A stretch of 64,000 nt of DNA, taken from positions 49,910,001-49,974,000 of the forward strand of contig OZ241831.1 in assembly GCA_965202585.1 (NCBI GenBank), given 5' to 3'. Shown in pieces: positions 1 to 42,675 of this stretch. The position numbers and the translations under genes are program-made. A model generated the notes under the pieces. That model ran no database searches and was not told the DNA's origin. It saw nothing but the letters and a program-made list of their open reading frames with translations. Each line of letters starts with the position of its first letter. The stretch's first letter is position 1. Origin of the DNA: Thalia democratica. Its lineage: Eukaryota.

Positions 1-65
1 TAATAACTAAATTTCATCAATGATAAGCTAAGTAAGTATTTAGATTTTTGCAATAAGAACTTATC

Positions 66-613
66 ATGCGCCAAGGTGGCCAAGTGCGCCAAGTCGCCAA
101 GTCGCATTGTCTATTGATTTTATGTTGCTATAGAAATTCATTAGAACTCATAAGAAATCAATGCGTTTCGACACTGTTTCGAGGTCGTATGTTCATCGTT
201 TTCATAAACGCCTCTTGTTTTCTTATCGAAGTAGCTATGCCGAAGCTAGTATATATACGCGTCAGTTCGGTTGGAAGTGTGAATTTGTGTGCAAAAAGTC
301 CAGAGAAAGAGAGCTCATATATTCGAAAAGAAGAGAATTATGCAAATTTTCGGACACAATTTTTTAATGATTTTGAGTCTACACCTGAAAGAGTTAGTGA
401 AATCGACTGCGCAGAAACGAGTTTCACCGAAGGGAGTTTCTTCGACAAAGCGGCGTCCGGATTGGTTGAAATAGAGCGGGAGTGGGGCAGGCGACGGGCG
501 TTCAAGAGGTACCTCGAGTCGCTGCTGATCCATTGCGAGAAACTGAACAACGTCAGAAAGCACCACGAAAAGTACATCGCCGAGCAGAAGAATTTCAAGC
601 AATTTTGCCGCGG
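66..613 (+). pseudogene. Truncated array unit (U0): leader plus first ~200 bp of the core, broken after ...TTGCCGCGG
   Basis: Near-identical to the array units until 613-616, then unrelated AT-rich sequence. The track ORF 66..635 ends in non-homologous residues (VIVWAI). Confidence 0.9.
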
Positions 614-623
614 TGTAATTGTG

Positions 624-14730: not shown

Positions 14731-15899
14731 ATGAACGTCAAAGAAAACTGGAAGCTCTTCTCCAAATCGAACGAACGGACACAATCCAAAAAGTCTTCAG
14801 ATCCTTCCACGAACGAGGCATAGAAGAACTGTACGAAACAGTTGCAAAGTACTTCGAACTGGTGCTGAAAATTCACTCCGAAGTGCGAGCCAGCTCCGGA
14901 ACGATGAAATTTTACCTGGAGAAGCAGATGCGCGAAGTCATGTCTTCCCTGCAGGAATACTGCAACAGGATAAAATCTGTGAGGAGTTTCAGCGGGGTCA
15001 GCGTTACATTCGGTTTCGAGCAGTTTCGAGCGGAAGTCGACTTCGACTTCAGCGGCTGCGAGACTCTCATCTCGTCAGAAGATCTTCAAAAGATGCACGA
15101 GCTCAAGAACAGCGTCGACTCAGTTGAAATGAGTTTCACCGAAGGGAGTTTCTTCGACAAAGCGGCGTCCGGATTGGTTGAAATAGAGCGGGAGTGGGGC
15201 AGGCAACGGGCGTTCAAGAGGTACCTCGAGTCGCTGCTGGTTCAGTGCGAGAAACTGAACGACGTCAGAAAGCACCACGAAAAGTACATCGCCGAGCAGA
15301 AGAATTTCAAGCAGTTTTGCCGCGGCGTGGCGCTGAAGGAAGAGCACAATCGAATGCAGAAAGTCGCTTGGGAGTGGGTTTGCAGGAAGGAGGGGGAAGC
15401 CAAGCTGGAGAACGTGTTCATCGGGTACTTTTCGTTTTTTCGAAAAATTTTCTTCGTGCAGAGCAGCTTGAGAGAAGAAGACAGGATTGCGCCAAATGGT
15501 TGTTCTGTGCAGATCAACAACGGATTAAACGCGGCTACGGAAGCGTTCAAAAAGTTCAGTTCGGACAACGAGTTCTTTTTGAACAACGCCGCCATCAAGC
15601 CGAACTTTTTAGTGGACGAGCTGCTAGGTTATGAGATAAACGCCGGCAACGTACGCAACTTTTTCAACCACCGTGTGGCGCACGTGAGGAACTATTCACC
15701 CGACTACGAGTTCGACGTTCGAAACATGGTCCGTTTCGTCAACGGGGAGAGCAGAACGAAGTCCATGGTGCCTGAGGTGCAGCGAGTGAGCAGGAAGCTC
15801 GCTGCAGGTAACCACTGCAAAATTTGCTTGAGTGAAGCAGAACAGGAGTTGAACTTACTGAACAGCAAATACGACTTTGAAAACATTAAGTTGAATTAA
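14731..15899 (+). CDS. Progenitor ORF or terminal exon, unknown protein; needs one -1 frame correction near 14770-14778 for ~389 aa (track ORF 14862..15899, 345 aa)
   Basis: The frame ending at 15899 is open from 14730 with coding-like codon use. The ATG frame at 14731 (MNVKENWKLFSKSNE...) stops at 14821. From 15115 on it is homologous to every array unit. Confidence 0.75.
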
Positions 15900-16006
15900 A
15901 ACAATAACTTTCAAAGTTATTTTTATTTAATTAATAACTAAATTTCATCAATGATAAGCTAAGTAAGTATTTAGATTTTTGCAATAAGAACTTATCATGC
16001 GCCAAG

Positions 16007-17101
16007 GTGGCCAAGTCGCATTGTCTATTGATTTTATGTTGCTATAGAAATTCATTAGAACTCATAAGAAATCAATGCGTTTCGACACTGTTTCGAGGTC
16101 GTATGTTCATCGTTTTCATAAACGCCTCTTGTTTTCTTATCGAAGTAGCTATGCCGAAGCTAGTATATATACGCGTCAGTTCGGTTGGAAGTGTGAATTT
16201 GTGTGCAAAAAGTCCAGAGAAAGAGAGCTCATATATTCGAAAAGAAGAGAATTATGCAAATTTTCGGACACAATTTTTTAATGATTTTGAGTCTACACCT
16301 GAAAGAGTTAGTGAAATCGACTGCGCAGAAACGAGTTTCACCGAAGGGAGTTTCTTCGACAAAGCGGCGTCCGGATTGGTTGAAATAGAGCGGGAGTGGG
16401 GCAGGCGACGGGCGTTCAAGAGGTACCTCGAGTCGCTGCTGATCCAGTGCGAGAAACTGAACAACGTCAGAAAGCACCACGAGAAGTACATTGCCGAGCA
16501 GAAGAATTTCAAGCAGTTTTGCCGCGGCGTGGCGCTGAAGGAAGAGCACAATCGAATGCAGAAAAACGCTTGGGAGTGGGTTTGCAGGAAGGAGGGGGAA
16601 GCCAAGCTGGAGAACGTGTTCATCGGGTACTTTTCGTTTTTTCGAAAAATTTTCTTCGTGCAGAGCAGCTTGAGAGAAGAAGACAGGATCGCGCCCAATG
16701 GTTATTCTGTGCAGATCAACAACGAGTTAGACGCGGCTTCGGAAGCGTTTAAAAAGTTCAGTTCGGAAAACGAGTTCTTTTTAAACGACGCCGCCATCAA
16801 GCCGAACTTTTTAGTGGACGAGCTGCTGGGTTATGAGATAAACGCCGGCAACGTACGCAACTTTTTCAACCACCGTGTGGCGAACGTGAGCAACTATTCA
16901 CCCGACTACGAGTTCGACGTTCGAAACATGGTCCGTTTCGTCAACGGGGAGAGCAGAATGAAGTCCATGGTGCCTGAGGTGCAGCGGGTGAGCAGGAAGC
17001 TCGCTGCAGGTAACCACTGCAAAATTTGCTTGAGTGAAGCAGAACAGGAGTTGAATTTGCTGAACAGCAAATACGACTTTGAAAACATTAAGTTGAATTA
17101 A
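16007..17101 (+). CDS. Array unit U1, open from GTG 16007 / ATG 16103; first ATG out of frame (leader VNTR -17)
   Basis: ORF track 364 aa. Confidence 0.6.
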   Translation: MAKSHCLLILCCYRNSLELIRNQCVSTLFRGRMFIVFINASCFLIEVAMPKLVYIRVSSVGSVNLCAKSPEKESSYIRKEENYANFRTQFFNDFESTPERVSEIDCAETSFTEGSFFDKAASGLVEIEREWGRRRAFKRYLESLLIQCEKLNNVRKHHEKYIAEQKNFKQFCRGVALKEEHNRMQKNAWEWVCRKEGEAKLENVFIGYFSFFRKIFFVQSSLREEDRIAPNGYSVQINNELDAASEAFKKFSSENEFFLNDAAIKPNFLVDELLGYEINAGNVRNFFNHRVANVSNYSPDYEFDVRNMVRFVNGESRMKSMVPEVQRVSRKLAAGNHCKICLSEAEQELNLLNSKYDFENIKLN

Positions 17102-17198
17102 AACAATAACTTTCAAAGTTTTTTTTATTTAATTAATAACTAAATTTCATCAATGATAAGCTAAGTAAGTATTTAGATTTTTGCAATAAGAACTTATC

Positions 17199-18299
17199 AT
17201 GCGCAAAGTCGCCAAGTCGCATTGTCTATTGATTTTATGTTGCTATAGAAATTCATTAGAACTCATAAGAAATCAATGCGTTTCGACACTGTTTCGAGGT
17301 CGTATGTTCATCGTTTTCATAAACGCCTCTTGTTTTCTTATCGAAGTAGCTATGCCGAAGCTCGTATATATACGCGTCAGTTCGGTTGGAAGTGTGAATT
17401 TGTGTGCAAAAAGTCCAGAGAAAGAGAGCTCATATATTTGAAAAGAAGAGAATTATGCAAATTTTCGGACACAATTTTTTAATGATTTTGAGTCTACACC
17501 TGAAAGAGTTAGTGAAATCGACTCCGTTGAAACGAGTTTCATCGAAGGGAGTTTCTTCGACAAAGCGGCGTCCGGATTGGTTGAAATAGAGCGCGAATGG
17601 GGCACCTTCACGTTCAAGAGGCACCTCGAGTCGCTGCTGTTCCAGTGCGAGAAACTGAACAACGTCAGAAAGCACCACGGAAAGTACATCGCCGAGCAGA
17701 AAAAGTTCAAGCAGTTTTGCCGCGGCGTGGCGCTGAAGGGAGAGCACAATCGAATGCAGAAAGTCGCTTGGGAGTGGGTTTACAGGAAGGAGGGGGAAGC
17801 CAGGCTCGAGAACGTGTTCATCGGGTACTTTTCGTTTTTTCGAAAAATTTTCTTCGTGCAGAGCAGCTTGAGAGAAGAAGACAGGATTGCGCCCAATGGT
17901 TATTCTGTGAAGATCAACAACGAGTAGGACGCGGCTTCGGAAGCGTTTAAAAAGTTCAGTTCGGACAACGAGCTCTGTTTAAACGACGCCGCCATCAAGC
18001 CGAACTTTTTAGTGGACGAACTGCTGGGTTATGAGATAAACGCCGGCAACGTACGCAACTTTTTCAACCACCGTGTGGCGAACGTGAGCAACTATTCACC
18101 CGACTACGAGTTCGACGTTCGAAACATGGTCCGTTTCGTCAACGGGGAGAGCAGAATGAAGTCCATGGTGCCTGAGGTGCAGCGGGTGAGCAGGAAGCTC
18201 GCTGCAGGTAACCACTGCAAAATTTGCTTGAGTGAAGCAGAACAGGAGTTGAATTTGCTGAACAGCAAATACGACTTTGAAAACATTAAGTTAAATTAA
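17199..18299 (+). pseudogene. U2, divergent subfamily; TGA 17439, TAG 17925
   Basis: Three same-frame ORF fragments. Confidence 0.85.
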
Positions 18300-18396
18300 A
18301 ACAACAACTTTCAAAGTTTTTTTTATTTAATTATTAACTAATTTTCATCAATGATAAGCTAAGTAAGTATTTAGATTTTTGCAAAAAGAACTTATC

Positions 18397-19497
18397 ATGC
18401 GCAAAGTCGCCAAGTCGCATTGTCTATTGATTTTATGTTGCTATAGAAATTCATTAGAACTCATAAGAAATCAATGCGTTTCGACACTGTTTCGAGGTCG
18501 TATGTTCATCGTTTTCATAAACGCCTCTTATTTTCTTATCGAAGTAGCTATGCCGAAGCTCGTATATATACGCGTCAGTTCGGTTGGAAGTGTGAATTTG
18601 TGTGCAAAAAGTCCAGAGAAAGAGAGCTCATATATTTGAAAAGAAGAGAATTATGCAAATTTTCGGACACAATTTTTTAATGATTTTGAGTCTACACCTG
18701 AAAGAGTTAGTGAAATCGACTCCGTTGAAACGAGTTTCATCGAAGGGAGTTTCTTCGACAAAGCGGCGTCCGGATTGGTTGAAATAGAGCGCGAATGGGG
18801 CACCTTCACGTTCAAGAGGCACCTCGAGTCGCTGCTGTTCCAGTGCGAGAAACTGAACAACCTCAGAAAGCACCACGAAAAGTTTATCGCCGAGCAGAAA
18901 AAGTTCAAGCAGTTTTGCCGCGGCGTGGCGCTGAAGGGAGAGCACAATCGAATGCAGAAAGTCGCTTGGGAGTGGGTTTACAGGAAGGAGGGGGAAGCCA
19001 GGCTCGAGAACGTGTTCATCGGGTACTTTTCGTTTTTTCGAAAAATTTTCTTCGTGCAGAGCAGCTTGAGAGAAGAAGACAGGATTGCGCCCAACGGTTA
19101 TTCTGTGCAGATCAACAACGAGTTGGACGCGGCTTCGGAAGCGTTTAAAAAGTTCAGTTCGGACAACGAGCTCTGTTTAAACGACGCCGCCATCAAGCCG
19201 AACTTTTTAGTGGACGAACTGCTGGGTTATGAGATAAACGCCGGCAACATTTGCAACTTTTTCAACCACCGTGCGGCGCACGTGAGCAACTATTCACCCG
19301 ACTACGAGTTCGACGTTCGAAACATGGTCCGTTTCGTCAACGGGGAGAGCAGAATGAAGTCCATGGTGCCTGAGGTGCAGCGGGTGAGCAGGAAGCTCGC
19401 TGCAGGTAACCACTGCAAAATTTGCTTGAGTGAAGCAGAACGAGAGTTGAATTTACTGAACAGCAAATACGACTTTGAAAACATTAAGTTAAATTAA
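18397..19497 (+). pseudogene. U3, divergent subfamily; TGA 18637 in leader, core open
   Basis: CGA>TGA substitution. Confidence 0.8.
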
Positions 19498-19594
19498 AAC
19501 AACAACTTTCAAAGTTTTTTTTATTTAATTATTAACTAAATTTCATCAATGATAAGCTAAGTAAGTATTTAGATTTTTGCAATAAGAACTTATC

Positions 19595-20695
19595 ATGCGC
19601 AAAGTCGCCAAGTCGCATTGTCTATTGATTTTATGTTGCTATAGAAATTCATTAGAACTCATAAGAAATCAATGCGTTTCGACACTGTTTCGAGGTCGTA
19701 TGTTCATCGTTTTCATAAACGCCTCTTGTTTTCTTATCGAAGTAGCTATGCCGAAGCTCGTATATATACGCGTCAGTTCGGTTGGAAGTGTGAATTTGTG
19801 TGCAAAAAGTCCAGAGAAAGAGAGCTCATATATTTGAAAAGAAGAGAATTATGCAAATTTTCGGACACAATTTTTTAATGATTTTGAGTCTACACCTGAA
19901 AGAGTTAGTGAAATCGACTCCGTTGAAACGAGTTTCATCGAAGGGAGTTTCTTCGACAAAGCGGCGTCCGGATTGGTTGAAATAGAGCGCGAATGGGGCA
20001 CCTTCACGTTCAAGAGGCACCTCGAGTCGCTGCTGTTGCAGTGCGAGAAACTGAACAACCTCAGAAAGCACCACGGAAAGTACATCGCCGAGCAGAAAAA
20101 GTTCAAGCAGTTTTGCCGCGGCGTGGCGCTGAAGGGAGAGCACAATCGAATGCAGAAAGTCGCTTGGGAGTGGGTTTACAGGAAGGAGGGGGAAGCCAGG
20201 CTCGAGAACGTGTTCATCGGGTACTTTTCGTTTTTTCGAAAAATTTTCTTCGTGCAGAGCAGCTTGAGAGAAGAAGACAGGATTGCGCCCAATGGTTATT
20301 CTGTGCAGATCAACAACGAGTTGGACGCGGCTTCGGAAGCGTTTAAAAAGTTCAGTTCGGACAACGAGTTCTTTTTAAACGACGCCGCCATCAAGCCGAA
20401 CTTTTTAGTGGACGAACTGCTGGGTTTCGAGATAAACGCCGGCAACGTACGCAACTTTTTCAACCACCGTGTGGCGAACGTGAGCAACTATTCACCCGAC
20501 TACGAGTTCGACGTTCGAAACATGGTCCGTTTCGTCAACGGGGAGAGCAGAATGAAGTCCATGGTGCCTGAGGTGCAGCGGGTGAGCAGGAAGCTCGCTG
20601 CAGGTAACAACTGCAAAATTTGCTTGAGTGAAGCAGAGCAGGAGTTGAATTTGCTGAACAGCAAATACGACTTTGAAAACATTAAGTTGAATTAA
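19595..20695 (+). pseudogene. U4, divergent subfamily; TGA 19835 in leader, core open
   Basis: CGA>TGA substitution. Confidence 0.8.
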
Positions 20696-20792
20696 AACAA
20701 TAACTTTCAAAGTTTTTTTTATTTAATTAATAACTAAATTTCATCAATGATAAGCTAAGTAAGTATTTAGATTTTTGCAATAAGAACTTATC

Positions 20793-21911
20793 ATGCGCCA
20801 AGGTGGCCAAGTGCGCCAAGTCGCCAAGTCGCATTGTCTATTGATTTTATGTTGCTATAGAAATTCATTAGAACTCATAAGAAATCAATGCGTTTCGACA
20901 CTGTTTCGAGGTCGTATGTTCATCGTTTTCATAAACGCCTCTTGTTTTCTTATCGAAGTAGCTATGCCGAAGCTAGTATATATACGCGTCAGTTCGGTTG
21001 GAAGTGTGAATTTGTTTGCAAAAATTCCAGAGAAAGAGAGCTCATATATTCGAAAAGAAGAGAATTATGCAAATTTTCGGACACAATTTTTTAATGATTT
21101 TGAGTCTACACCTGAAAGAGTTAGTGAAATCGACTGCGCAGAAACGAGTTTCACCGAAGGGAGTTTCTTTGACAAAGCGGCGTCCGGATTGGTTGAAATA
21201 GAGCGGGAGTGGGGCAGGCAACGGGCGTTCAAGAGGTACCTCGAGTCGCTGCTGCTGCAGTGCGAGAGACTGAACAACGTCAGAAAGCACCACGAAAAGT
21301 ACATCGCCGAGCAGAAGAATTTCAAGCAATTTTGCCGCGGCGTGGCGCTGAAGGAAGAGCACAATCGAATGCGGAAAGTCGCTTGGGAGTGGGTTTACAG
21401 GAATGAGTTCTCCAAGCTGGAGAACGTGTTCATCGGGTACTTTTCGTTTTTTCGAAAAATTTTCCTCGTGCAGAGCAGCTTGAGAGAAGAAGACAGGATC
21501 GCGCCCAATGGTTATTCTGCGAAGATCAACAACGAGTTGGACGCGGCTTCGGAAGCGTTCAAAAAGTTCAGTTCGGACAACGAGTTCTTTTTAAACGACG
21601 CCGCCATCAAGTCGAACTTTTTAGTGGACGAACTGCTAGGTTATGAGATAAACGCCGGCAACGTACGCAACTTTTTCAACCACCGTGTGGCGAACGTGAG
21701 CAACTATTCACCCGACTACGAGTTCGACGTTCGAAACATGGTCCGTTTCGTCAACGGGGAGAGCAGAATGAAGTCCATGGTGCCTGAGGTGCAGCGAGTG
21801 AGCAGGAAGCTCGCTGCAGGTAACCACTGCAAAATTTGCTTGAGTGAAGCAGAACAGGAGTTGAACTTACTGAACAGCAAATACGACTTTGAAAACATTA
21901 AGTTGAATTAA
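20793..21911 (+). CDS. U5, intact 372 aa (RNEFSKLE replaces RKEGEAKLE)
   Basis: Open from ATG to stop. Confidence 0.7.
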   Translation: MRQGGQVRQVAKSHCLLILCCYRNSLELIRNQCVSTLFRGRMFIVFINASCFLIEVAMPKLVYIRVSSVGSVNLFAKIPEKESSYIRKEENYANFRTQFFNDFESTPERVSEIDCAETSFTEGSFFDKAASGLVEIEREWGRQRAFKRYLESLLLQCERLNNVRKHHEKYIAEQKNFKQFCRGVALKEEHNRMRKVAWEWVYRNEFSKLENVFIGYFSFFRKIFLVQSSLREEDRIAPNGYSAKINNELDAASEAFKKFSSDNEFFLNDAAIKSNFLVDELLGYEINAGNVRNFFNHRVANVSNYSPDYEFDVRNMVRFVNGESRMKSMVPEVQRVSRKLAAGNHCKICLSEAEQELNLLNSKYDFENIKLN

Positions 21912-22018
21912 AACAATAACTTTCAAAGTTATTTTTATTTAATTAATAACTAAATTTCATCAATGATAAGCTAAGTAAGTATTTAGATTTTCGCAATAAG
22001 AACTTATCATGCGCCAAG

Positions 22019-23113
22019 GTGGCCAAGTCGCATTGTCTATTGATTTTATGTTGCTATAGAAATTCATTAGAACTCATAAGAAATCAATGCGTTTCGACAC
22101 TGTTTCGAGGTCGTATGTTCATCGTTTTCATAAACGCCTCTTGTTTTCTTATCGAAGTAGCTATGCCGAAGCTAGTATATATACGCGTCAGTTCGGTTGG
22201 AAGTGTGAATTTGTGTGCAAAAAGTCCAGAGAAAGAGAGCTCATATATTCGAAAAGAAGAGAATTATGCAAATTTTCGGACACAATTTTTTAATGATTTT
22301 GAGTCTACACCTGAAAGAGTTAGTGAAATCGACTGCGCAGAAACGAGTTTCACCGAAGGGAGTTTCTTCGACAAAGCGGCGTCCGGATTGGTTGAAATAG
22401 AGCGGGAGTGGGGCAGGCGACGGGCGTTCAAGAGGTACCTCGAGTCGCTGCTGATCCAGTGCGAGAAACTGAACAACGTCAGAAAGCACCACGAGAAGTA
22501 CATTGCCGAGCAGAAGAATTTCAAGCAGTTTTGCCGCGGCGTGGCGCTGAAGGAAGAGCACAATCGAATGCAGAAAAACGCTTGGGAGTGGGTTTGCAGG
22601 AAGGAGGGGGAAGCCAAGCTGGAGAACGTGTTCATCGGGTACTTTTCGTTTTTTCGAAAAATTTTCTTCGTGCAGAGCAGCTTGAGAGAAGAAGACAGGA
22701 TCGCGCCCAATGGTTATTCTGTGCAGATCAACAACGAGTTAGACGCGGCTTCGGAAGCGTTTAAAAAGTTCAGTTCGGAAAACGAGTTCTTTTTAAACCA
22801 CGCCGCCATCAAGCCGAACTTTTTAGTGGACGAGCTGCTGGGTTATGAGATAAACGCCGGCAACGTACGCAACTTTTTCAACCACCGTATGGCGAACGTG
22901 AGCAACTATTCACCCGACTACGAGTTCGACGTTCGAAACATGGTCCGTTTCGTCAACGGGGAGAGCAGAATGAAGTCCATGGTGCCTGAGGTGCAGCGGG
23001 TGAGCAGGAAGCTCGCTGCAGGTAACCACTGCAAAATTTGCTTGAGTGAAGCAGAACAGGAGTTGAATTTGCTGAACAGCAAATACGACTTTGAAAACAT
23101 TAAGTTGAATTAA
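22019..23113 (+). CDS. U6, near-copy of U1
   Basis: ORF track 364 aa. Confidence 0.6.
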   Translation: MAKSHCLLILCCYRNSLELIRNQCVSTLFRGRMFIVFINASCFLIEVAMPKLVYIRVSSVGSVNLCAKSPEKESSYIRKEENYANFRTQFFNDFESTPERVSEIDCAETSFTEGSFFDKAASGLVEIEREWGRRRAFKRYLESLLIQCEKLNNVRKHHEKYIAEQKNFKQFCRGVALKEEHNRMQKNAWEWVCRKEGEAKLENVFIGYFSFFRKIFFVQSSLREEDRIAPNGYSVQINNELDAASEAFKKFSSENEFFLNHAAIKPNFLVDELLGYEINAGNVRNFFNHRMANVSNYSPDYEFDVRNMVRFVNGESRMKSMVPEVQRVSRKLAAGNHCKICLSEAEQELNLLNSKYDFENIKLN

Positions 23114-23210
23114 AACAATAACTTTCAAAGTTTTTTTTATTTAATTAATAACTAAATTTCATCAATGATAAGCTAAGTAAGTATTTAGATTTTTGCAATA
23201 AGAACTTATC

Positions 23211-24311
23211 ATGCGCAAAGTCGCCAAGTCGCATTGTCTATTGATTTTATGTTGCTATAGAAATTCATTAGAACTCATAAGAAATCAATGCGTTTCGACA
23301 CTGTTTCGAGGTCGTATGTTCATCGTTTTCATAAACGCCTCTTGTTTTCTTATCGAAGTAGCTATGCCGAAGCTCGTATATATACGCGTCAGTTCGGTTG
23401 GAAGTGTGAATTTGTGTGCAAAAAGTCCAGAGAAAGAGAGCTCATATATTTGAAAAGAAGAGAATTATGCAAATTTTCGGACACAATTTTTTAATGATTT
23501 TGAGTCTACACCTGAAAGAGTTAGTGAAATCGACTCCGTTGAAACGAGTTTCATCGAAGGGAGTTTCTTCGACAAAGCGGCGTCCGGATTGGTTGAAATA
23601 GAGCGCGAATGGGGCACCTTCACGTTCAAGAGGCACCTCGAGTCGCTGCTGTTCCAGTGCGAGAAACTGAACAACGTCAGAAAGCACCACGGAAAGTACA
23701 TCGCCGAGCAGAAAAAGTTCAAGCAGTTTTGCCGCGGCGTGGCGCTGAAGGGAGAGCACAATCGAATGCAGAAAGTCGCTTGGGAGTGGGTTTGCAGGAA
23801 GGAGGGGGAAGCCAGGCTCGAGAACGTGTTCATCGGGTACTTTTCGTTTTTTCGAAAAATTTTCTTCGTGCAGAGCAGCTTGAGAGAAGAAGACAGGATT
23901 GCGCCCAATGGTTATTCTGTGAAGATCAACAACGAGTAGGACGCGGCTTCGGAAGCGTTTAAAAAGTTCAGTTCGGACAACGAGCTCTGTTTAAACGACG
24001 CCGCCATCAAGCCGAACTTTTTAGTGGACGAACTGCTGGGTTATGAGATAAACGCCGGCAACGTACGCAACTTTTTCAACCACCGTGTGGCGAACGTGAG
24101 CAACTATTCACCCGACTACGAGTTCGACGTTCGAAACATGGTCCGTTTCGTCAACGGGGAGAGCAGAATGAAGTCCATGGTGCCTGAGGTGCAGCGAGTG
24201 AGCAGGAAGCTCGCTGCAGGTAACCACTGCAAAATTTGCTTGAGTGAAGCAGAACAGGAGTTGAACTTACTGAACAGCAAATACGACTTTGAAAACATTA
24301 AGTTGAATTAA
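23211..24311 (+). pseudogene. U7, near-copy of U2 (TGA 23451, TAG 23937)
   Basis: Same lesions as U2. Confidence 0.85.
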
Positions 24312-24418
24312 AACAATAACTTTCAAAGTTATTTTTATTTAATTAATAACTAAATTTCATCAATGATAAGCTAAGTAAGTATTTAGATTTTCGCAATAAG
24401 AACTTATCATGCGCCAAG

Positions 24419-25513
24419 GTGGCCAAGTCGCATTGTCTATTGATTTTATGTTGCTATAGAAATTCATTAGAACTCATAAGAAATCAATGCGTTTCGACAC
24501 TGTTTCGAGGTCGTATGTTCATCGTTTTCATAAACGCCTCTTGTTTTCTTATTGAAGCAGCTATGCCGAAGCTAGTATATATACGCGTCAGTTCGGTTGG
24601 AAGTGTGAATTTGTGTGCAAAAAGTCCAGAGAAAGAGAGCTCATATATTCGAAAAGAAGAGAATTTTGCAAATTTTCGGACACAATTTTTTAATGATTTT
24701 GAGTCTACACCTGAAAGAGTTAGTGAAATCGACTGCGCAGAAACGAGTTTCACCGAAGGGAGTTTCTTCGACAAAGCGGCGTCCGGATTGGTTGAAATAG
24801 AGCGGGAGTGGGGCAGGCGACGGGCGTTCAAGAGGTACCTCGAGTCGCTGCTGGTTCAGTGCGAGAAACTGAACAACGTCAGAAAGCACCACGAAAAGTA
24901 CATCGCCGAGCAGAAGAATTTCAAGCATTTTTGCCGCGGCGTGGCGCTGAAGGAAGAGCACAACCGAATGCAGAAAGTCGCTTGGGAGTGGGTTTGCAGG
25001 AAGGAGGGGGAAGCCAAGCTGGAGAACGTGTTCATCGGGTATTTTTCGTTTTTTCGAAAAATTTTCTTCGTGCGAAGCAGCTTGAGAGAAGAAGACAGGA
25101 TCGCGCCCAATGGTTATTCTGTGCAGATCAACAACGAGTTAGACGCGGCTTCGGAAGCGTTCAAAAAGTTCAGTTCGGACAACGAGTTCTTTTTGAACAA
25201 CGCCGCCATCAAGCCGAACTTTTTAGTGGACGAGCTGCTTGGTTATGAGATAAACGCCGGCAACGTACGCAACTTTTTCAACCACCGTGTTGCGCACGTG
25301 AGCAGCTATTCACCCGACTACGAGTTCGACGTTCGAAACATGGTCCGTTTCGTCAACGGGGAGAGCGGAATGAAGTCCATGGTGCCTGAGGTGCAGCGGG
25401 TGAGCAGGAAGCTCGCTGCAGGTAACAACTGCAAAATTTGCTTGAGTGAAGCAGAACGAGATTTGAACTTGCTGAACAACAAATACGACTTTGAAAACAT
25501 TAAGTTGAATTAA
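24419..25513 (+). CDS. U8, open from GTG or internal ATG (VNTR -17)
   Basis: ORF track 364 aa. Confidence 0.6.
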   Translation: MAKSHCLLILCCYRNSLELIRNQCVSTLFRGRMFIVFINASCFLIEAAMPKLVYIRVSSVGSVNLCAKSPEKESSYIRKEENFANFRTQFFNDFESTPERVSEIDCAETSFTEGSFFDKAASGLVEIEREWGRRRAFKRYLESLLVQCEKLNNVRKHHEKYIAEQKNFKHFCRGVALKEEHNRMQKVAWEWVCRKEGEAKLENVFIGYFSFFRKIFFVRSSLREEDRIAPNGYSVQINNELDAASEAFKKFSSDNEFFLNNAAIKPNFLVDELLGYEINAGNVRNFFNHRVAHVSSYSPDYEFDVRNMVRFVNGESGMKSMVPEVQRVSRKLAAGNNCKICLSEAERDLNLLNNKYDFENIKLN

Positions 25514-25611
25514 AACAATAACTTTCAAAGTTTTTTTTTATTTAATTAATAACTAAATTTCATCAATGATAAGCTAAGTAAGTATTTAGATTTTTGCAAT
25601 AAGAACTTATC

Positions 25612-26733
25612 ATGCGCCAAGGTGGCCAAGTGCGCCAAGTCGCCAAGTCGCATTGTCTATTGATTTTATGTTGCTATAGAAATTCATTAGAACTCATAAG
25701 AAATCAATGCGTTTCGACACTGTTTCGAGGTCGTATGTTCATCGTTTTCATAAACGCCTCTTGTTTTCTTATCGAAGCAGCTATGCCGAAGCTAGTATAT
25801 ATACGCGTCAGTTCGGTTGGAAGTGTGAATTTGTGTGCAAAAAGTCCAGAGAAAGAGAGCTCATATATTCGAAAAGAAGAGAATTATGCAAATTTTCGGA
25901 CACAATTTTTTAATGATTTTGAGTCTACACCTGAAAGAGTTAGTGAAATCGACTGCGCAGAAACGAGTTTCACCGAAGGGAGTTTCTTCGACAAAGCGGC
26001 GTCCGGATTGGTTGAAATAGAGCGGGAGTGGGGCAGGCGACGGGCGTTCAAGAGGTACCTCGAGTCGCTGCTGGTTCAGTGCGAGAAACTGAACAACGTC
26101 AGAAAGCACCACGAAAAGTACATCGCCGAGCAGAAGAATTTCAAGCATTTTTGCCGCGGCGTGGCGCTGAAGGAAGAGCACAACCGAATGCAGAAAGTCG
26201 CTTGGGAGTGGGTTTGCAGGAAGGAGGGGGAAGCCAAGCTGGAGAACGTGTTCATCGGGTATTTTTCGTTTTTTCGAAAAATTTTCTTCGTGCGAAGCAG
26301 CTTGAGAGAAGAAGACAGGATCGCGCCCAATGGTAATTCTGTGAAGATTAACAACGAGTTGGACGCGGCTTCGGAAGCGTTCAAAAAGTTCAGTTCGGAC
26401 AACGAGTTCTTTTTGAACAACGCCGCCATCAAGCCGAACTTTTTAGTGGACGAGCTGCTTGGTTATGAGATAAACGCCGGCAACGTACGCAACTTTTTCA
26501 ACCACCGTGTGGCGAACGTGAGCAACTACTCACCCGACTACGAGTTCGACGTTCGAAACATGGTCCGTTTCGTCAACGGGGAGAGCGGAATGAAGTCCAT
26601 GGTGCCTGAGGTGCAGCGGGTGAGCAGGAAGCTCGCTGCAGGTAACAACTGCAAAATTTGCTTGAGTGAAGCAGAACGAGATTTGAACTTGCTGAACAAC
26701 AAATACGACTTTGAAAACATTAAGTTGAATTAA
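25612..26733 (+). CDS. U9, intact 373 aa
   Basis: Open from ATG to stop. Confidence 0.7.
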   Translation: MRQGGQVRQVAKSHCLLILCCYRNSLELIRNQCVSTLFRGRMFIVFINASCFLIEAAMPKLVYIRVSSVGSVNLCAKSPEKESSYIRKEENYANFRTQFFNDFESTPERVSEIDCAETSFTEGSFFDKAASGLVEIEREWGRRRAFKRYLESLLVQCEKLNNVRKHHEKYIAEQKNFKHFCRGVALKEEHNRMQKVAWEWVCRKEGEAKLENVFIGYFSFFRKIFFVRSSLREEDRIAPNGNSVKINNELDAASEAFKKFSSDNEFFLNNAAIKPNFLVDELLGYEINAGNVRNFFNHRVANVSNYSPDYEFDVRNMVRFVNGESGMKSMVPEVQRVSRKLAAGNNCKICLSEAERDLNLLNNKYDFENIKLN

Positions 26734-26830
26734 AACAATAACTTTCAAAGTTTTTTTTATTTAATTAATAACTAAATTTCATCAATGATAAGCTAAGTAA
26801 GTATTTAGATTTTTGCAATAAGAACTTATC

Positions 26831-27952
26831 ATGCGCCAAGGTGGCCAAGTGCGCCAAGTCGCCAAGTCGCATTGTCTATTGATTTTATGTTGCTATAGAA
26901 ATTCATTAGAACTCATAAGAAATCAATGCGTTTCGACACTGTTTCGAGGTCGTATGTTCATCGTTTTCATAAACGCCTCTTGTTTTCTTATCGAAGTAGC
27001 TATGCCGAAGCTAGTATATATACGCGTCAGTTCGGTTGGAAGTGTGAATTTGTGTGCAAAAAGTCCAGAGAAAGAGAGCTCATATATTCGAAAAGAAGAG
27101 AATTATGCAAATTTTCGGACACAATTTTTGAATGATTTTGAGTCTTCACCTGAAAGAGTTAGTGAAATCGACTGCGCAGAAACGAGTTTCACCGAAGGGA
27201 GTTTCTTTGACAAAGCGGCGTCCGGATTGGTTGAAATAGAGCGGGAGTGGGGCAGGCAACGGGCGTTCAAGAGGTACCTCGAGTCGCTGCTGGTGAAGTG
27301 CGAGAAACTGAACAACGTCAGAAAGCACCACGAAAAGTACATCGCCGAGCAGAAGAATTTCAAGCAGTTTTGCCGCGGCGTGGCGCTGAAGGAAGAGCAC
27401 AACCGAATGCAGAAAGTCGCTTGGGAGTGGGTTTGCAGGAAGGAGGGGGAAGCCAAGCTGAAGAACGTGTTCATCGGGTACTTTTCGTTTTTTCGAAAAA
27501 TTTTCTTCGTGCGAAGCAGCTTGAGAGAAGAAGACAGGATCGCGCCCAATGGTTATTCTGTGCAGATCAACAACGAGTTAGACGCGGCTTCGGAAGCGTT
27601 TAAAAAGTTCAGTTCGGACAACGAGTTCTTTTTGAACAACGCCGCCATCAAGCCGAACTTTTTAGTGGACGAACTGCTAGGTTATGAGATAAACGCCAGC
27701 AACGTGCGCAACTTTTTCAACCACCGTGTGGCGTACGTGAGCAACTATTCACCCGACTACGAGTTCGACGTTCGAAACATGGTCCGTTTCGTCAACGGGA
27801 AGAGCGGAATGAAGTCCATGGTGCCTGAGGTGCAGCGGGTGAGCAGGAAGCTCGCTGCAGGTAACAACTGCAAAATTTGCTTGAGTGAAGCAGAACGAGA
27901 GTTGAACTTGCTGAACAGCAAATACGACTTTGAAAACATTAAGTTGAATTAA
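26831..27952 (+). CDS. U10, intact 373 aa
   Basis: Open from ATG to stop. Confidence 0.7.
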   Translation: MRQGGQVRQVAKSHCLLILCCYRNSLELIRNQCVSTLFRGRMFIVFINASCFLIEVAMPKLVYIRVSSVGSVNLCAKSPEKESSYIRKEENYANFRTQFLNDFESSPERVSEIDCAETSFTEGSFFDKAASGLVEIEREWGRQRAFKRYLESLLVKCEKLNNVRKHHEKYIAEQKNFKQFCRGVALKEEHNRMQKVAWEWVCRKEGEAKLKNVFIGYFSFFRKIFFVRSSLREEDRIAPNGYSVQINNELDAASEAFKKFSSDNEFFLNNAAIKPNFLVDELLGYEINASNVRNFFNHRVAYVSNYSPDYEFDVRNMVRFVNGKSGMKSMVPEVQRVSRKLAAGNNCKICLSEAERELNLLNSKYDFENIKLN

Positions 27953-28172
27953 AACAATAACTTTCAAAGTTTTTTTTATTTAATTAATAACTAAATTTCA
28001 TCAATGATAAGCTAAGTAAGTATTTAGATTTTTGCAATAAGAACTTATCATGCGCCAAGGTGGCCAAGTGCGCCAAGTCGCCAAGTCGCATTGTCTATTG
28101 ATTTTATGTTGATATAGAAATTCATTAGAACTCATAAGAAATCAATGCGTTTCGACACTGTTTCGAGGTCGT

Positions 28173-29171
28173 ATGTTCATCGTTTTCATAAACGCCTCTT
28201 GTTTTCTTATCGAAGTAGCTATGCCGAAGCTAGTATATATACGCGTCAGTTCGGTTGGAAGTGTGAATTTGTGTGCAAAAAGTCCAGAGAAAGAGAGCTC
28301 ATATATTCGAAAAGAAGAGAATTATGCAAATTTTCGGACACAATTTTTTAATGATTTTGAGTCTACACCTGAAAGAGTTAGTGAAATCGACTGCGCAGAA
28401 ACGAGTTTCACCGAAGGGAGTTTCTTCGACAAAGCGGCGTCCGGATTGGTTGAAATAGAGCGGGAGTGGGGCAGGCGACGGGCGTTCAAGAGGTACCTCG
28501 AGTTGCTGCTGGTCCATTGCGAGAAACTGAACAACGTCAGAAAGCACCACGAAAAGTACATCGCCAAGCAGAAGAATTTCAAGCAGTTTTGCCGCGGCGT
28601 GGCGCTGAAGGAAGAGCACAATCGAATGCAGAAAGTCGCTTGGAAGTGGGTTTACAGGAAGGAGGGGGAAGCAAAGCTGGAGAACGTGTTCATCGGGCAC
28701 TTTTCGTTTTTTCGAAAATTTTTCTTCGTGCTGAGCAGCTTGAGAGAAGAAGACAGGATCGCGCCAAATGGTTGTTCTGTGCAGATCAACAACGAGTTAG
28801 ACGCGGCTTCGGAAGCGTTTAAAAAGTTCAGTTCGGACAACGAGTTCTTTTTGAACAACGCCGCCATCAAGCCGAACTTTTTAGTGGACGAACTGCTGGG
28901 TTATGAGATAATCGCCGGAAACGTACGCAACTTTTTCAACCACCGTGTGGCGAACGTGAGCAACTATTCACCCGACTACGAGTTCGACGTTCGAAACATG
29001 GTCCGTTTCGTCAACGGGGAGGGCGGAATGAAGTCCATGGTGCCTGAGGTGCAGCGGGTGAGCAGGAAGCTCGCTGCAGGTAACAAATGCAAAATTTGCT
29101 TGAGTGAAGCAGAACGGGAGTTGAATTTGCTGAACAGCAAATACGACTTTGAAAACATTAAGTTGAATTAA
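28173..29171 (+). CDS. U11, open from internal ATG (332 aa); TGC>TGA in the upstream leader
   Basis: gttgatatag variant. Confidence 0.55.
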   Translation: MFIVFINASCFLIEVAMPKLVYIRVSSVGSVNLCAKSPEKESSYIRKEENYANFRTQFFNDFESTPERVSEIDCAETSFTEGSFFDKAASGLVEIEREWGRRRAFKRYLELLLVHCEKLNNVRKHHEKYIAKQKNFKQFCRGVALKEEHNRMQKVAWKWVYRKEGEAKLENVFIGHFSFFRKFFFVLSSLREEDRIAPNGCSVQINNELDAASEAFKKFSSDNEFFLNNAAIKPNFLVDELLGYEIIAGNVRNFFNHRVANVSNYSPDYEFDVRNMVRFVNGEGGMKSMVPEVQRVSRKLAAGNKCKICLSEAERELNLLNSKYDFENIKLN

Positions 29172-29268
29172 AACAATAACTTTCAAAGTTTTTTTTATTT
29201 AATTAATAACTAAATTTCATCAATGATAAGCTAAGTAAGTATTTAGATTTTTGCAATAAGAACTTATC

Positions 29269-30390
29269 ATGCGCCAAGGTGGCCAAGTGCGCCAAGTCGC
29301 CAAGTCGCATTGTCTATTGATTTTATGTTGCTATAGAAATTCATTAGAACTCATAAGAAATCAATGCGTTTCGACACTGTTTCGAGGTCGTATGTTCATC
29401 GTTTTCATAAACGCCTCTTGTTTTCTTATCGAAGTAGCTATGCCGAAGCTCGTATATATACGCGTCAGTTCGGTTGGAAGTGTGAATTTGTGTGCAAAAA
29501 GTCCAGAGAAAGAGAGCTCATATATTCGAAAAGAAGAGAATTATGCAAATTTTCGGACACAATTTTTGAATGATTTTGAGTCTTCACCTGAAAGAGTTAG
29601 TGAAATCGACTGCGCAGAAACGAGTTTCACCGAAGGGAGTTTCTTTGACAAAGCGGCGTCCGGATTGGTTGAAATAGAGCGGGAGTGGGGCAGGCAACGG
29701 GCGTTCAAGAGGTACCTCGAGTCGCTGCTGGTGAAGTGCGAGAAACTGAACAACGTCAGAAAGCACCACGAAAAGTACATCGCCGAGCAGAAGAATTTCA
29801 AGCAGTTTTGCCGCGGCGTGGCGCTGAAGGAAGAGCACAACCGAATGCAGAAAGTCGCTTGGGAGTAGGTTTGCAGGAAGGAGGGGGAAGCCAAGCTGAA
29901 GAACGTGTTCATCGGGTACTTTTCGTTTTTTCGAAAAATTTTCTTCGTGCGAAGCAGCTTGAGAGAAGAAGACAGGATCGCGCCCAATGGTTATTCTGTG
30001 CAGATCAACAACGAGTTAGACGCGGCTTCGGAAGCGTTTAAAAAGTTCAGTTCGGACAACGAGTTCTTTTTGAACAACGCCGCCATCAAGCCGAACTTTT
30101 TAGTGGACGAACTGCTAGGTTATGAGATAAACGCCAGCAACGTGCGCAACTTTTTCAACCACCGTGTGGCGTACGTGAGCAACTATTCACCCGACTACGA
30201 GTTCGACGTTCGAAACATGGTCCGTTTCGTCAACGGGAAGAGCGGAATGAAGTCCATGGTGCCTGAGGTGCAGCGGGTGAGCAGGAAGCTCGCTGCAGGT
30301 AACAACTGCAAAATTTGCTTGAGTGAAGCAGAACGAGAGTTGAACTTGCTGAACAGCAAATACGACTTTGAAAACATTAAGTTGAATTAA
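29269..30390 (+). pseudogene. U12, copy of U10 with TGG>TAG at 29866
   Basis: Split ORFs. Confidence 0.8.
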
Positions 30391-30610
30391 AACAATAACT
30401 TTCAAAGTTTTTTTTATTTAATTAATAACTAAATTTCATCAATGATAAGCTAAGTAAGTATTTAGATTTTTGCAATAAGAACTTATCATGCGCCAAGGTG
30501 GCCAAGTGCGCCAAGTCGCCAAGTCGCATTGTCTATTGATTTTATGTTGATATAGAAATTCATTAGAACTCATAAGAAATCAATGCGTTTCGACACTGTT
30601 TCGAGGTCGT

Positions 30611-31609
30611 ATGTTCATCGTTTTCATAAACGCCTCTTGTTTTCTTATCGAAGTAGCTATGCCGAAGCTAGTATATATACGCGTCAGTTCGGTTGGAAGT
30701 GTGAATTTGTGTGCAAAAAGTCCAGAGAAAGAGAGCTCATATATTCGAAAAGAAGAGAATTATGCAAATTTTCGGACACAATTTTTTAATGATTTTGAGT
30801 CTACACCTGAAAGAGTTAGTGAAATCGACTGCGCAGAAACGAGTTTCACCGAAGGGAGTTTCTTCGACAAAGCGGCGTCCGGATTGGTTGAAATAGAGCG
30901 GGAGTGGGGCAGGCGACGGGCGTTCAAGAGGTACCTCGAGTTGCTGCTGGTCCATTGCGAGAAACTGAACAACGTCAGAAAGCACCACGAAAAGTACATC
31001 GCCAAGCAGAAGAATTTCAAGCAGTTTTGCCGCGGCGTGGCGCTGAAGGAAGAGCACAATCGAATGCAGAAAGTCGCTTGGAAGTGGGTTTACAGGAAGG
31101 AGGGGGAAGCAAAGCTGGAGAACGTGTTCATCGGGCACTTTTCGTTTTTTCGAAAATTTTTCTTCGTGCTGAGCAGCTTGAGAGAAGAAGACAGGATCGC
31201 GCCAAATGGTTGTTCTGTGCAGATCAACAACGAGTTAGACGCGGCTTCGGAAGCGTTTAAAAAGTTCAGTTCGGACAACGAGTTCTTTTTGAACAACGCC
31301 GCCATCAAGCCGAACTTTTTAGTGGACGAACTGCTGGGTTATGAGATAATCGCCGGAAACGTACGCAACTTTTTCAACCACCGTGTGGCGAACGTGAGCA
31401 ACTATTCACCCGACTACGAGTTCGACGTTCGAAACATGGTCCGTTTCGTCAACGGGGAGGGCGGAATGAAGTCCATGGTGCCTGAGGTGCAGCGGGTGAG
31501 CAGGAAGCTCGCTGCAGGTAACAAATGCAAAATTTGCTTGAGTGAAGCAGAACGGGAGTTGAATTTGCTGAACAGCAAATACGACTTTGAAAACATTAAG
31601 TTGAATTAA
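30611..31609 (+). CDS. U13, copy of U11 (332 aa)
   Basis: Same variants as U11. Confidence 0.55.
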   Translation: MFIVFINASCFLIEVAMPKLVYIRVSSVGSVNLCAKSPEKESSYIRKEENYANFRTQFFNDFESTPERVSEIDCAETSFTEGSFFDKAASGLVEIEREWGRRRAFKRYLELLLVHCEKLNNVRKHHEKYIAKQKNFKQFCRGVALKEEHNRMQKVAWKWVYRKEGEAKLENVFIGHFSFFRKFFFVLSSLREEDRIAPNGCSVQINNELDAASEAFKKFSSDNEFFLNNAAIKPNFLVDELLGYEIIAGNVRNFFNHRVANVSNYSPDYEFDVRNMVRFVNGEGGMKSMVPEVQRVSRKLAAGNKCKICLSEAERELNLLNSKYDFENIKLN

Positions 31610-31801
31610 AACAATAACTTTCAAAGTTTTTTTTATTTAATTAATAACTAAATTTCATCAATGATAAGCTAAGTAAGTATTTAGATTTTTGCAATAAGAA
31701 CTTATCATGCGCCAAGGTGGCCAAGTGCGCCAAGTCGCCAAGTCGCATTGTCTATTGATTTTATGTTGCTATAGAAATTCATTAGAACTCATAAGAAATC
31801 A

Positions 31802-32827
31802 ATGCGTTTGACACTGTTTCGAGGTCGTATGTTCATCGTTTTCATAAACGCCTCTTGTTTTCTTATCGAAGTAGCTATGCCGAAGCTCGTATATATACGC
31901 GTCAGTTCGGTTGGAAGTGTGAATTTGTGTGCAAAAAGTCCAGAGAAAGAGAGCTCATATATTCGAAAAGAAGAGAATTATGCAAATTTTCGGACACAAT
32001 TTTTGAATGATTTTGAGTCTTCACCTGAAAGAGTTAGTGAAATCGACTGCGCAGAAACGAGTTTCACCGAAGGGAGTTTCTTCGACAAAGCGGCGTCCGG
32101 ATTGGTTGAAATAGAGCGGGAGTGGGGCAGGCGACGGGCGTTCAAGAGGTACCTCGAGTCGCTGCTGATCCAATGCGAGAATCTGAACAACGTCAGAAAG
32201 CACCACGAAAAGTACATCGCCGAGCAGAAGAAGTTCAAGCAGTTTTGCCGCGGCGTGGCGCTGAAGGAGGAGCACAATCGAATGCAGAAAGTCGCTTGGG
32301 AGTGGGTTTGCAGGAAGGAGGGGGAAGCCAAGCTGGAGAACGTGTTCATCGGGTACTTTTCGTTTTTTCGAAAAATTTTCTTCGTGCTGAGCAGCTTGAG
32401 AGAAGAAGACAGGATCGCGCCCGATGGTTGTTCTGCGAAGATCAACAACGAGTTGGACGCGGCTTCGGAAGCGTTTAAAAAGTTCAGTTCGGACAACGAG
32501 TTCTTTTTGAACAACGCCGCCATCAAGCCGAACTTTTTAGTGGACGAACTGCTGGGTTATGAGATAAACGCCGGAAACGTACGCAACTTTTTCAACCACC
32601 GTGTGGCGAACGTGAGCAACTATTCACCCGACTACGAGTTCGACGTTCGAAACATGGTCCGTTTCGTCAACGGGGAGGGCGGAATGAAGTCCATGGTGCC
32701 TGAGGTGCAGCGGGTGAGCAGGAAGCTCGCTGCAGGTAACAAATGCAAAATTTGCTTGAGTGAAGCAGAACGGGAGTTGAATTTGCTGAACAGCAAATAC
32801 GACTTTGAAAACATTAAGTTGAATTAA
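31802..32827 (+). CDS. U14, 1-nt deletion in leader (gcgtttgac), open downstream
   Basis: ORF track 341 aa. Confidence 0.55.
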   Translation: MRLTLFRGRMFIVFINASCFLIEVAMPKLVYIRVSSVGSVNLCAKSPEKESSYIRKEENYANFRTQFLNDFESSPERVSEIDCAETSFTEGSFFDKAASGLVEIEREWGRRRAFKRYLESLLIQCENLNNVRKHHEKYIAEQKKFKQFCRGVALKEEHNRMQKVAWEWVCRKEGEAKLENVFIGYFSFFRKIFFVLSSLREEDRIAPDGCSAKINNELDAASEAFKKFSSDNEFFLNNAAIKPNFLVDELLGYEINAGNVRNFFNHRVANVSNYSPDYEFDVRNMVRFVNGEGGMKSMVPEVQRVSRKLAAGNKCKICLSEAERELNLLNSKYDFENIKLN

Positions 32828-32924
32828 AACAATAACTTTCAAAGTTTTTTTTATTTAATTAATAACTAAATTTCATCAATGATAAGCTAAGTAAGTATTT
32901 AGATTTTTGCAATAAGAACTTATC

Positions 32925-34046
32925 ATGCGGCAAGGTGGCCAAGTGCGCCAAGTCGCCAAGTCGCATTGTCTATTGATTTTATGTTGCTATAGAAATTCAT
33001 TAGAACTCATAAGAAATCAATGCGTTTCGACACTGTTTCGAGGTCGTATGTTCATCGTTTTCATAAACGCCTCTTGTTTTCTTATCGAAGTAGCTATGCC
33101 GAAGCTCGTATATATACGCGTCAGTTCGGTTGGAAGTGTGAATTTGTGTGCAAAAAGTCCAGAGAAAGAGAGCTCATATATTCGAAAAGAAGAGAATTAT
33201 GCAAATTTTCGGACACAATTTTTGAATGATTTTGAGTCTTCACCTGAAAGAGTTAGTGAAATCGACTGCGCAGAAACGAGTTTCACCGAAGGGAGTTTCT
33301 TCGACAAAGCGGCGTCCGGATTGGTTGAAATAGAGCGGGAGTGGGGCAGGCGACGGGCGTTCAAGAGGTACCTCGAGTCGCTGCTGATCCAATGCGAGAA
33401 TCTGAACAACGTCAGAAAGCACCACGAAAAGTACATCGCCGAGCAGAAGAAGTTCAAGCAGTTTTGCCGCGGCGTGGCGCTGAAGGAGGAGCACAATCGA
33501 ATGCAGAAAGTCGCTTGGGAGTGGGTTTGCAGGAAGGAGGGGGAAGCCAAGCTGGAGAACGTGTTCATCGGGTACTTTTCGTTTTTTCGAAAAATTTTCT
33601 TCGTGCTGAGCAGCTTGAGAGAAGAAGACAGGATCGCGCCCGATGGTTGTTCTGCGAAGATCAACAACGAGTTGGACGCGGCTTCGGAAGCGTTTAAAAA
33701 GTTCAGTTCGGACAACGAGTTCTTTTTGAACAACGCCGCCATCAAGCCGAACTTTTTAGTGGACGAACTGCTGGGTTATGAGATAAACGCCGGAAACGTA
33801 CGCAACTTTTTCAACCACCGTGTGGCGAACGTGAGCAACTATTCACCCGACTACGAGTTCGACGTTCGAAACATGGTCCGTTTCGTCAACGGGGAGGGCG
33901 GAATGAAGTCCATGGTGCCTGAGGTGCAGCGGGTGAGCAGGAAGCTCGCTGCAGGTAACAAATGCAAAATTTGCTTGAGTGAAGCAGAACGGGAGTTGAA
34001 TTTGCTGAACAGCAAATACGACTTTGAAAACATTAAGTTGAATTAA
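32925..34046 (+). CDS. U15, intact 373 aa
   Basis: Open from ATG to stop. Confidence 0.7.
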   Translation: MRQGGQVRQVAKSHCLLILCCYRNSLELIRNQCVSTLFRGRMFIVFINASCFLIEVAMPKLVYIRVSSVGSVNLCAKSPEKESSYIRKEENYANFRTQFLNDFESSPERVSEIDCAETSFTEGSFFDKAASGLVEIEREWGRRRAFKRYLESLLIQCENLNNVRKHHEKYIAEQKKFKQFCRGVALKEEHNRMQKVAWEWVCRKEGEAKLENVFIGYFSFFRKIFFVLSSLREEDRIAPDGCSAKINNELDAASEAFKKFSSDNEFFLNNAAIKPNFLVDELLGYEINAGNVRNFFNHRVANVSNYSPDYEFDVRNMVRFVNGEGGMKSMVPEVQRVSRKLAAGNKCKICLSEAERELNLLNSKYDFENIKLN

Positions 34047-34143
34047 AACAATAACTTTCAAAGTTTTTTTTATTTAATTAATAACTAAATTTCATCAATG
34101 ATAAGCTAAGTAAGTATTTAGATTTTTGCAATAAGAACTTATC

Positions 34144-35265: not shown

Positions 35266-35362
35266 AACAATAACTTTCAAAGTTTTTTTTATTTAATTAA
35301 TAACTAAATTTCATCAATGATAAGCTAAGTAAGTATTTAGATTTTTGCAATAAGAACTTATC

Positions 35363-36484: not shown

Positions 36485-36581
36485 AACAATAACTTTCAAA
36501 GTTTTTTTTATTTAATTAATAACTAAATTTCATCAATGATAAGCTAAGTAAGTATTTAGATTTTTGCAATAAGAACTTATC

Positions 36582-37703: not shown

Positions 37704-37800
37704 AACAATAACTTTCAAAGTTTTTTTTATTTAATTAATAACTAAATTTCATCAATGATAAGCTAAGTAAGTATTTAGATTTTTGCAATAAGAACTTATC

Positions 37801-38922: not shown

Positions 38923-39019
38923 AACAATAACTTTCAAAGTTTTTTTTATTTAATTAATAACTAAATTTCATCAATGATAAGCTAAGTAAGTATTTAGATT
39001 TTTGCAATAAGAACTTATC

Positions 39020-40140: not shown

Positions 40141-40237
40141 AACAATAACTTTCAAAGTTTTTTTTATTTAATTAATAACTAAATTTCATCAATGATAAGC
40201 TAAGTAAGTATTTAGATTTTTGCAATAAGAACTTATC

Positions 40238-41358: not shown

Positions 41359-41455
41359 AACAATAACTTTCAAAGTTTTTTTTATTTAATTAATAACTAA
41401 ATTTCATCAATGATAAGCTAAGTAAGTATTTAGATTTTTGCAATAAGAACTTATC

Positions 41456-42577: not shown

Positions 42578-42675
42578 AACAATAACTTTCAAAGTTTTTT
42601 TTTATTTAATTAATAACTAAATTTCATCAATGATAAGCTAAGTAAGTATTTAGATTTTTGCAATAAGAACTTATC

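Follow-up and report, generated by a model that had tools for sequence, protein, structure and literature searches.

When a tandem duplication joins part of a gene to unrelated DNA and the joint remains an open reading frame, does a family of new genes result, or an array of fragments that only look like genes? The question is raised by a stretch of 64,000 nucleotides from Thalia democratica (the window, located on C7), in which a tandem array with a period of 1198–1220 bp begins at 16317 and runs to the window end. The array comprises 39 complete head-to-tail units on the forward strand (16317..63719), each made up of a core, a stop and an insert, followed on the same strand by the start of a 40th unit (63720..64000), and pattern hits show that it continues past the window. 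Units are 95–100% identical to one another, the GC content rises from ~24% in the flanking spacer to ~44% in the array, and the arrangement has the kilobase-sized head-to-tail units in tens to hundreds of copies that are expected of a coding macrosatellite. Upstream of the first unit lies a head copy (14731..15899, forward strand), which an earlier reading of this DNA, made without database searches (the sequence-only reading), took to be the progenitor of the units. The abrupt start of homology that it described is real, the identity of the head copy to unit 1 being 17–27%, a random level, across the 120 bp preceding 15115/16317 and 83–100% from these positions onward. From this joint it proposed that the duplication had created a chimeric ORF and, with it, a young gene family. 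The window itself opens with a partial unit (1..616, forward strand) that closes a preceding short array and consists of the leader and the first 214 bp of the core before breaking off into AT-rich spacer.

The gene from which the array derives was identified by a six-frame search of the 800-Mb genome which found full-length relatives. Three of these are uninterrupted ORFs of 489–491 aa, two of them (L004 and L005) 40–100 kb upstream on the opposite strand and the third (L009) at 31.8 Mb, and all three consist of the N-terminus and core of the head followed by 102 more residues that lead into a RING-H2 finger. The ancestor was of this type, an intronless gene for a RING-H2 protein of 489–491 aa. 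Pfam zf-RING_2 (PF13639) matches the C-terminus of L004 (E 4.5e-10) and L009 (E 1.1e-9), in both cases above cutoff, and the C3H2C3 ligands and RING fold of a RING-H2 E3 ubiquitin ligase are found in the full-length paralogues as well as in the distal units of the arrays. The parent family is under purifying selection, with dN/dS values of 0.19–0.31 for the full-length paralogues. Structure prediction and fold searching, which the sequence-only reading had recommended for the core, were carried out on the whole protein. An AlphaFold model built from an 11-sequence family alignment (mean pLDDT 80) predicts two helical domains, at residues 3–192 and 193–419, plus the RING, and model residues 414–489 superpose on RNF38 with a Z score of 9.5 and an rmsd of 1.7 Å over 68 residues. 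The C-terminal domain thus resembles RING-H2 E3 ligases of the RNF38/Arkadia/RNF12 type in both sequence and predicted fold, whereas the 420-residue helical body has no specific relative; fold searches with it returned generic helical-bundle matches only, and the ESM Atlas gave no usable match. The family as a whole is narrow, with 4 clusters in a word search of 5.8 billion proteins, 4 core-related representatives in an exhaustive search of 1.84 billion, or ~8 related clusters across 1.8–5.8 billion proteins. Relatives outside this genome were found in marine metagenome and metatranscriptome data only.

Measured against these paralogues, the array is located inside the RING gene, in the order N-terminus, core, [insert, core] repeated, and RING tail. 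The N-terminal 128 codons stand at the proximal end (14731) and are frameshifted in this window. The core that is present in every unit (15115..15886, forward strand) corresponds to RING-gene residues 129–387 of 489, and the head and all units cease to be homologous to the RING-bearing paralogues at 15886, where a K-L-N-stop replaces the tail. Neither the head copy nor the units contain a RING domain, as both end at the equivalent of residue 387; a Pfam scan of the head and unit ORFs gave no match reaching cutoff, and an Rfam scan of 14000–17600 at a permissive threshold gave no match. The core is not the terminal exon that the sequence-only reading took it for, but an internal piece (residues 129–387, without the catalytic RING) of a gene that was intronless, and a complete functional ORF is not retained in the units. 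The left edge of the core (residue 129) falls in a linker, the sole stretch of the model with pLDDT below 50, and its right edge (residue 387) coincides with the beginning of a long helix, so the fragment cuts both predicted helical domains.

The frameshift in the head copy is due to a 1-nt deletion at 14744 relative to seven paralogues, and codons past the fourth are out of frame. The deletion state is also present on a duplicate contig, and one DNA run contains contigs both with and without the extra base at 14744. Three other head copies, each starting another array, were noted at C7:50141356 (L006), C7:50160876 (L007) and C7:50192214 (L008); all three are interrupted by in-frame TAG stops, to which L007 and L008 add a 1-nt deletion. 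Only one of the five heads is intact (L003, C7:49906361).

Within the arrays, the missing RING tail survives at the distal ends alone, which lie outside the window. The sequence-only reading had pointed to the distal end as the place to see what the leader continues into, and two such ends were read (L013 and L014). In both, the last unit lacks the K-L-N-stop and extends through the RING tail; the resulting open frames, 470 and 476 aa long, join leader, core and RING and keep all RING ligands. For the array of the window, pattern hits place a last unit with RING at C7:50079570-50080688; pattern hits alone also serve to locate the middle of the C7 array and the C1 and C8 loci described below. 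The spacing of these hits shows a ~14-kb gap without unit motifs (C7:49978.6-49992.9 kb) that interrupts the array, and this gap near C7:49.979-49.993 Mb is about as long as the AT-rich spacer that occupies window positions 617-14730. About 1.5 kb past the distal RING gene, a 205-codon open frame (L013:5167-5781, C7:50082167-50082781) contains a GIY-YIG-like motif (…KIYIGSTAGSFKDRY…) and is possibly the remnant of a mobile-element endonuclease beside the array end.

The DNA that follows the stop of the head (417 bp, 15900-16316) is the leader of the units. As the sequence-only reading had stated, it is AT-rich and open in frame; ~115 open codons lead through it and on into the core, with ATGs at 15997, 16103 and 16151. 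The 430 bp between core copies proved to be a mosaic of three parts. The first, 73 bp at 15885-15957 (forward strand), is the source of the K-L-N-stop. It has 88% identity to an AT-rich intergenic stretch that lies ~6 kb upstream of L004, and shorter stretches upstream of L003 and L005 match it too; in these places the DNA is non-coding. Few-base microhomology is present at the break, 15885-15890. The second part, a filler of about 40 bp (15958-15999, forward strand), has 164 forward and no reverse matches in the genome, all of them in the C7 arrays or their duplicate contigs. The third, which supplies most of the leader codons, is a captured copy of a dispersed module (16000-16315, forward strand) with ~230 further genomic copies. 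It contains two strongly conserved blocks, TATATATA at 16164-16171 and ATGCAAAT at 16254-16261; a 31-mer around the former has 398 genomic matches, with exact copies on C1, C2, C4 and elsewhere on C7, and a 34-mer around the latter has 234, including a second tandem array at C1:91.38-91.45 Mb, where they recur about every 1203 bp. The 27-nt joint between leader and core has 167 genomic matches, duplicate contigs included, all on a single strand and all at C7:49.9-50.2 Mb or on the duplicate contigs, indicating that the joint arose once.

Several conceivable origins of the leader were rejected. The old 3′ flank of the gene, which the sequence-only reading had proposed, is ruled out, as paralogue homology ends at 15886 and the mosaic begins there, and a lost RING-coding region read in another frame is likewise ruled out, there being no DNA homology past 15886. 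The ancestral N-terminus of a conventional paralogue, which the same reading had named as a finding that would overturn its proposal, was also looked for with a negative result, since all conventional relatives start with a sequence like MNVKDKLEALLQ or with an equivalent helix. The idea that the leader codes for part of a conventional protein was rejected on both protein searches: a word search with leader residues 1-113 returned only the array's own ORF, and an exhaustive search returned only short ORFs of 59-100 aa with unrelated tails.

Natively, the module is non-coding DNA upstream of the start codons of other genes, on other chromosomes. A first metagenome scan found nothing, and a second yielded one contig (L051) with an 84%-identical, intergenic copy. 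The two blocks in L051 are almost invariant relative to the array module; the leader reading frame is interrupted there by a stop and changed by an indel between the blocks, and 30 nt past the module a GC-rich ORF opens in a different frame. The genome has 57 occurrences of the L051-type continuation downstream of the module, ATG included, all within the C1:91.38-91.45 Mb array; the continuation also turned up as a loose end of sequence in one DNA run. This second tandem array (G000:C1:91381604-91449899, minus strand) repeats every 1188-1211 bp, with no fewer than 57 units, and its module is followed by an ATG 24 nt later, and at C8:60253548 the module is colinear into yet another sequence. 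A further suggestion of the sequence-only reading, that the leader came from the 5′ end of a neighboring gene, comes close, in that the module lies upstream of start codons elsewhere, although these are on other chromosomes. Given its position and conservation, the element is most likely a promoter/5′-UTR module. The TATA-like run in the array copy (16164-16171) lies downstream of all three in-frame leader ATGs, and if it is a working promoter, the 332–373-aa product would not arise: in transcripts starting there, an out-of-frame AUG (16255) would come first, and the in-frame AUG that follows it would give 181 aa.

Open frames of 332-373 aa are present in 17 of the 39 units (ten of 372/373 aa, one of 341 and six of 332), an example of the longest chimeric ORF being 25612..26733 on the forward strand (373 aa, MRQGGQ... 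to ...IKLN). Only these have the product lengths given by the sequence-only reading; the other 22 units are cut by stops or frameshifts. Fourteen distinct disabling lesions were counted (7 stop-gains and 7 frameshifts), several of them common to 2-7 units, indicating that broken units were copied on.

Selection on the units was assessed conditional on the observed mutation spectrum, including CpG context, with variants stratified by unit frequency. Among core variants found in a single unit, 11 were synonymous against a neutral expectation of 11.4, and among those in 2-5 units, 18 against 18.5; rare core variants follow the neutral pattern. Variants in more than 5 units include 29 synonymous changes where 16.1 are expected, a significant excess that was reached in none of 5000 simulations. 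Of these common variants, however, 66% match the state of a full-length paralogue, compared with 9% by chance, and the excess is accordingly inherited or imported rather than the product of selection on units. Core stop-gain variants are somewhat fewer than expected (3 against 6.5), though not significantly so. The leader variants comprise 3 synonymous, 11 non-synonymous and 4 stop-gain changes, with 4.4 synonymous changes and 1.7 stops expected under neutrality, and no coding signature was found among them. Selection on the new coding part, of the kind that marks chimeras of the Sdic/jingwei type, was thus not detected, and the frame is also lost in L051. With rare variants neutral, the leader devoid of a coding signature and broken units re-amplified, the proposal of a young gene family is not supported.

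The insert is 3-4 times less variable than the core (π 0.005-0.02 versus 0.03-0.07), with 4 singletons in its 345 bp and 45 in the 780 bp of the core. Its low diversity may mean that the module is constrained as DNA, or that this part of the unit is a homogenisation hot spot. The higher core diversity is not explained by CpG decay, and conversion by paralogues accounts for only part of the difference between core and insert. A valley in π (0.005-0.01) was observed at unit offsets 780-1020, for instance at window positions 15900-16135, in the non-genic part of the unit.

From these results we consider it probable that the locus is a gene-derived macrosatellite, a decaying array of truncated RING-gene fragments joined to non-coding DNA. 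What survives of the chimeric-ORF proposal is that an open frame was created at the duplication joint from two unrelated sources; the progenitor that it assumed is incomplete, consisting of the N-terminus and core without the RING tail. One replication-type template-switch event would have duplicated the core (codons 129-387) and stitched 430 bp of foreign DNA into the joint, a proposal that fits the few-base microhomology at the break. The inserted DNA would have been assembled from 73 bp of nearby intergenic sequence, ~40 bp of filler and ~315 bp of the dispersed module. Unequal crossing-over between the middle parts would then have expanded the [middle part + insert] to ~165 units, and segmental duplication of the whole locus would have produced the several head-array blocks. 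We infer that the insert is open in frame by chance, and that most of the units yield nothing useful as protein. Weighing against this account are the 17 units that are still open, the slight shortfall of core stop-gains, the low variability of the insert, which could mean that the module is in use, and, as set out below, a metatranscriptome contig across the joint, gene calls in public contigs and distal RING tails that look constrained.

The alternative that survives best, though we regard it as unlikely, is that the units are working transcription units with the module as promoter or 5′ UTR, the RING-less products of intact units, 332-373 aa or, from the internal AUG, 181 aa, acting as a dosage-amplified decoy or regulator of the parental ligase under birth-and-death turnover. 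Such units would be consistent with the sense orientation of the module just upstream of start codons elsewhere, with its being the least variable part of the unit and with the 17 open frames, and the chimeric ORF was predicted by gene callers in seven public contigs (the P0003 cluster of public assemblies). They are harder to reconcile with the neutrality of recent core mutations, the unconstrained leader frame, the re-amplification of broken units and a fragment that cuts both helical domains. The RNA libraries, which are marine metatranscriptomes in the form of assembled contigs, speak on both sides. One 81-nt contig touches the joint, covering 16249-16329 with 68 nt of leader and 13 nt of core, and three other contigs from the same library tile the module and continue into C8-type sequence. 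The same library, however, has no core contigs, a single one being found in another library, and it holds other high-copy DNA, a 75-bp repeat that is very abundant; the joint contig may thus stem from DNA carry-over.

A second alternative confines function to the last unit of each array, which would be a new RING ligase with its first 128 residues replaced by the module or with its mRNA starting in the module, the inner units being by-products of crossing-over. Besides the open distal frames of 470 and 476 aa with all their RING ligands, this would agree with dN/dS values for the distal RING tails of 0.14-0.18 versus L004 and 0.27 between the two distal copies; the tails look constrained, but the values rest on few changes (8-13), and conversion from intact paralogues could mimic constraint. 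As an account of the whole locus we find this quite doubtful, yet it is compatible with the macrosatellite explanation rather than opposed to it, and the last unit of each array, retaining the RING tail, looks like the sole candidate working gene. A combination of both alternatives, in which the captured module drives, from the last unit, a new RING ligase with a replaced N-terminus, together with up to ~100 RING-less inner-unit products that titrate the partners of the parental ligase, strikes us as similarly improbable. If true, it would amount to a dosage-tunable decoy system built by unequal crossing-over, and the low diversity of the module would reflect selection on promoter function. 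That the array is an assembly artefact, a collapsed or mis-joined repeat, is extremely improbable: long identical arrays are hard to assemble, and the number of units and the 14-kb gap may not be exact, but core and leader words occur at 10-60 times the depth of single-copy flank in two DNA-type runs from two studies, the six-frame genome search found the same structure on three contigs, and the unit variants form ordered higher-order patterns.

A gene-derived macrosatellite of this kind can be compared with four known systems. Each unit of human D4Z4 holds a complete DUX4 ORF. The array resembles D4Z4 in its kilobase-sized head-to-tail units, each with an intronless ORF, and in a last unit that would be functionally distinct because of its flank, but its units are an internal gene fragment, the catalytic domain appearing only after the last one. 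Units of the human RS447/USP17 megasatellite are complete, promoter-bearing genes with demonstrated activity; they too derive from an intronless ubiquitin-system gene, whereas the units described here lack the RING and evolve neutrally. Drosophila Sdic likewise has a chimera at the duplication joint, a new 5′ end from non-coding DNA and tandem amplification. Sdic has transcriptional, functional and selective support, whereas the leader here is without coding constraint and half of the units are broken. The Drosophila Stellate and Su(Ste) arrays are also gene-derived tandem repeats, with an altered gene copy and a foreign insert. They are engaged in a protein/piRNA conflict on the sex chromosomes, whereas the present array gives no indication of small RNAs or drive.

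The locus is a clean, datable case of a tandem array arising inside a gene. Of this gene, a head remains at one end, a tail that may still work at the other, and between them a long series of dead middle pieces; the same event turned non-coding upstream DNA into more than 100 apparent codons. The analysis contributes the head/array/RING-tail layout, the three-part composition of the insert, the location of the module upstream of genes in its native setting and the frequency-stratified selection test. The result also calls for caution in annotation, as ~70 long 'orphan' ORFs would be predicted at the locus. If the module is an active promoter, the array would represent a natural promoter-capture experiment with ~165 repeats.

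Two short repeats were observed in the spacer upstream of the head copy. An element of ~75 bp at window positions 14257-14332 has an extreme copy number, with a summed word depth of 1.6-2.0e5 in two DNA-type runs against ~300 for its flanks, and it is also present in marine metatranscriptome library contigs; it is probably a very abundant short interspersed repeat. At 2398-2629, a 75-bp unit with a hairpin and a T-run is repeated 3.1 times (Tandem Repeats Finder score 420).
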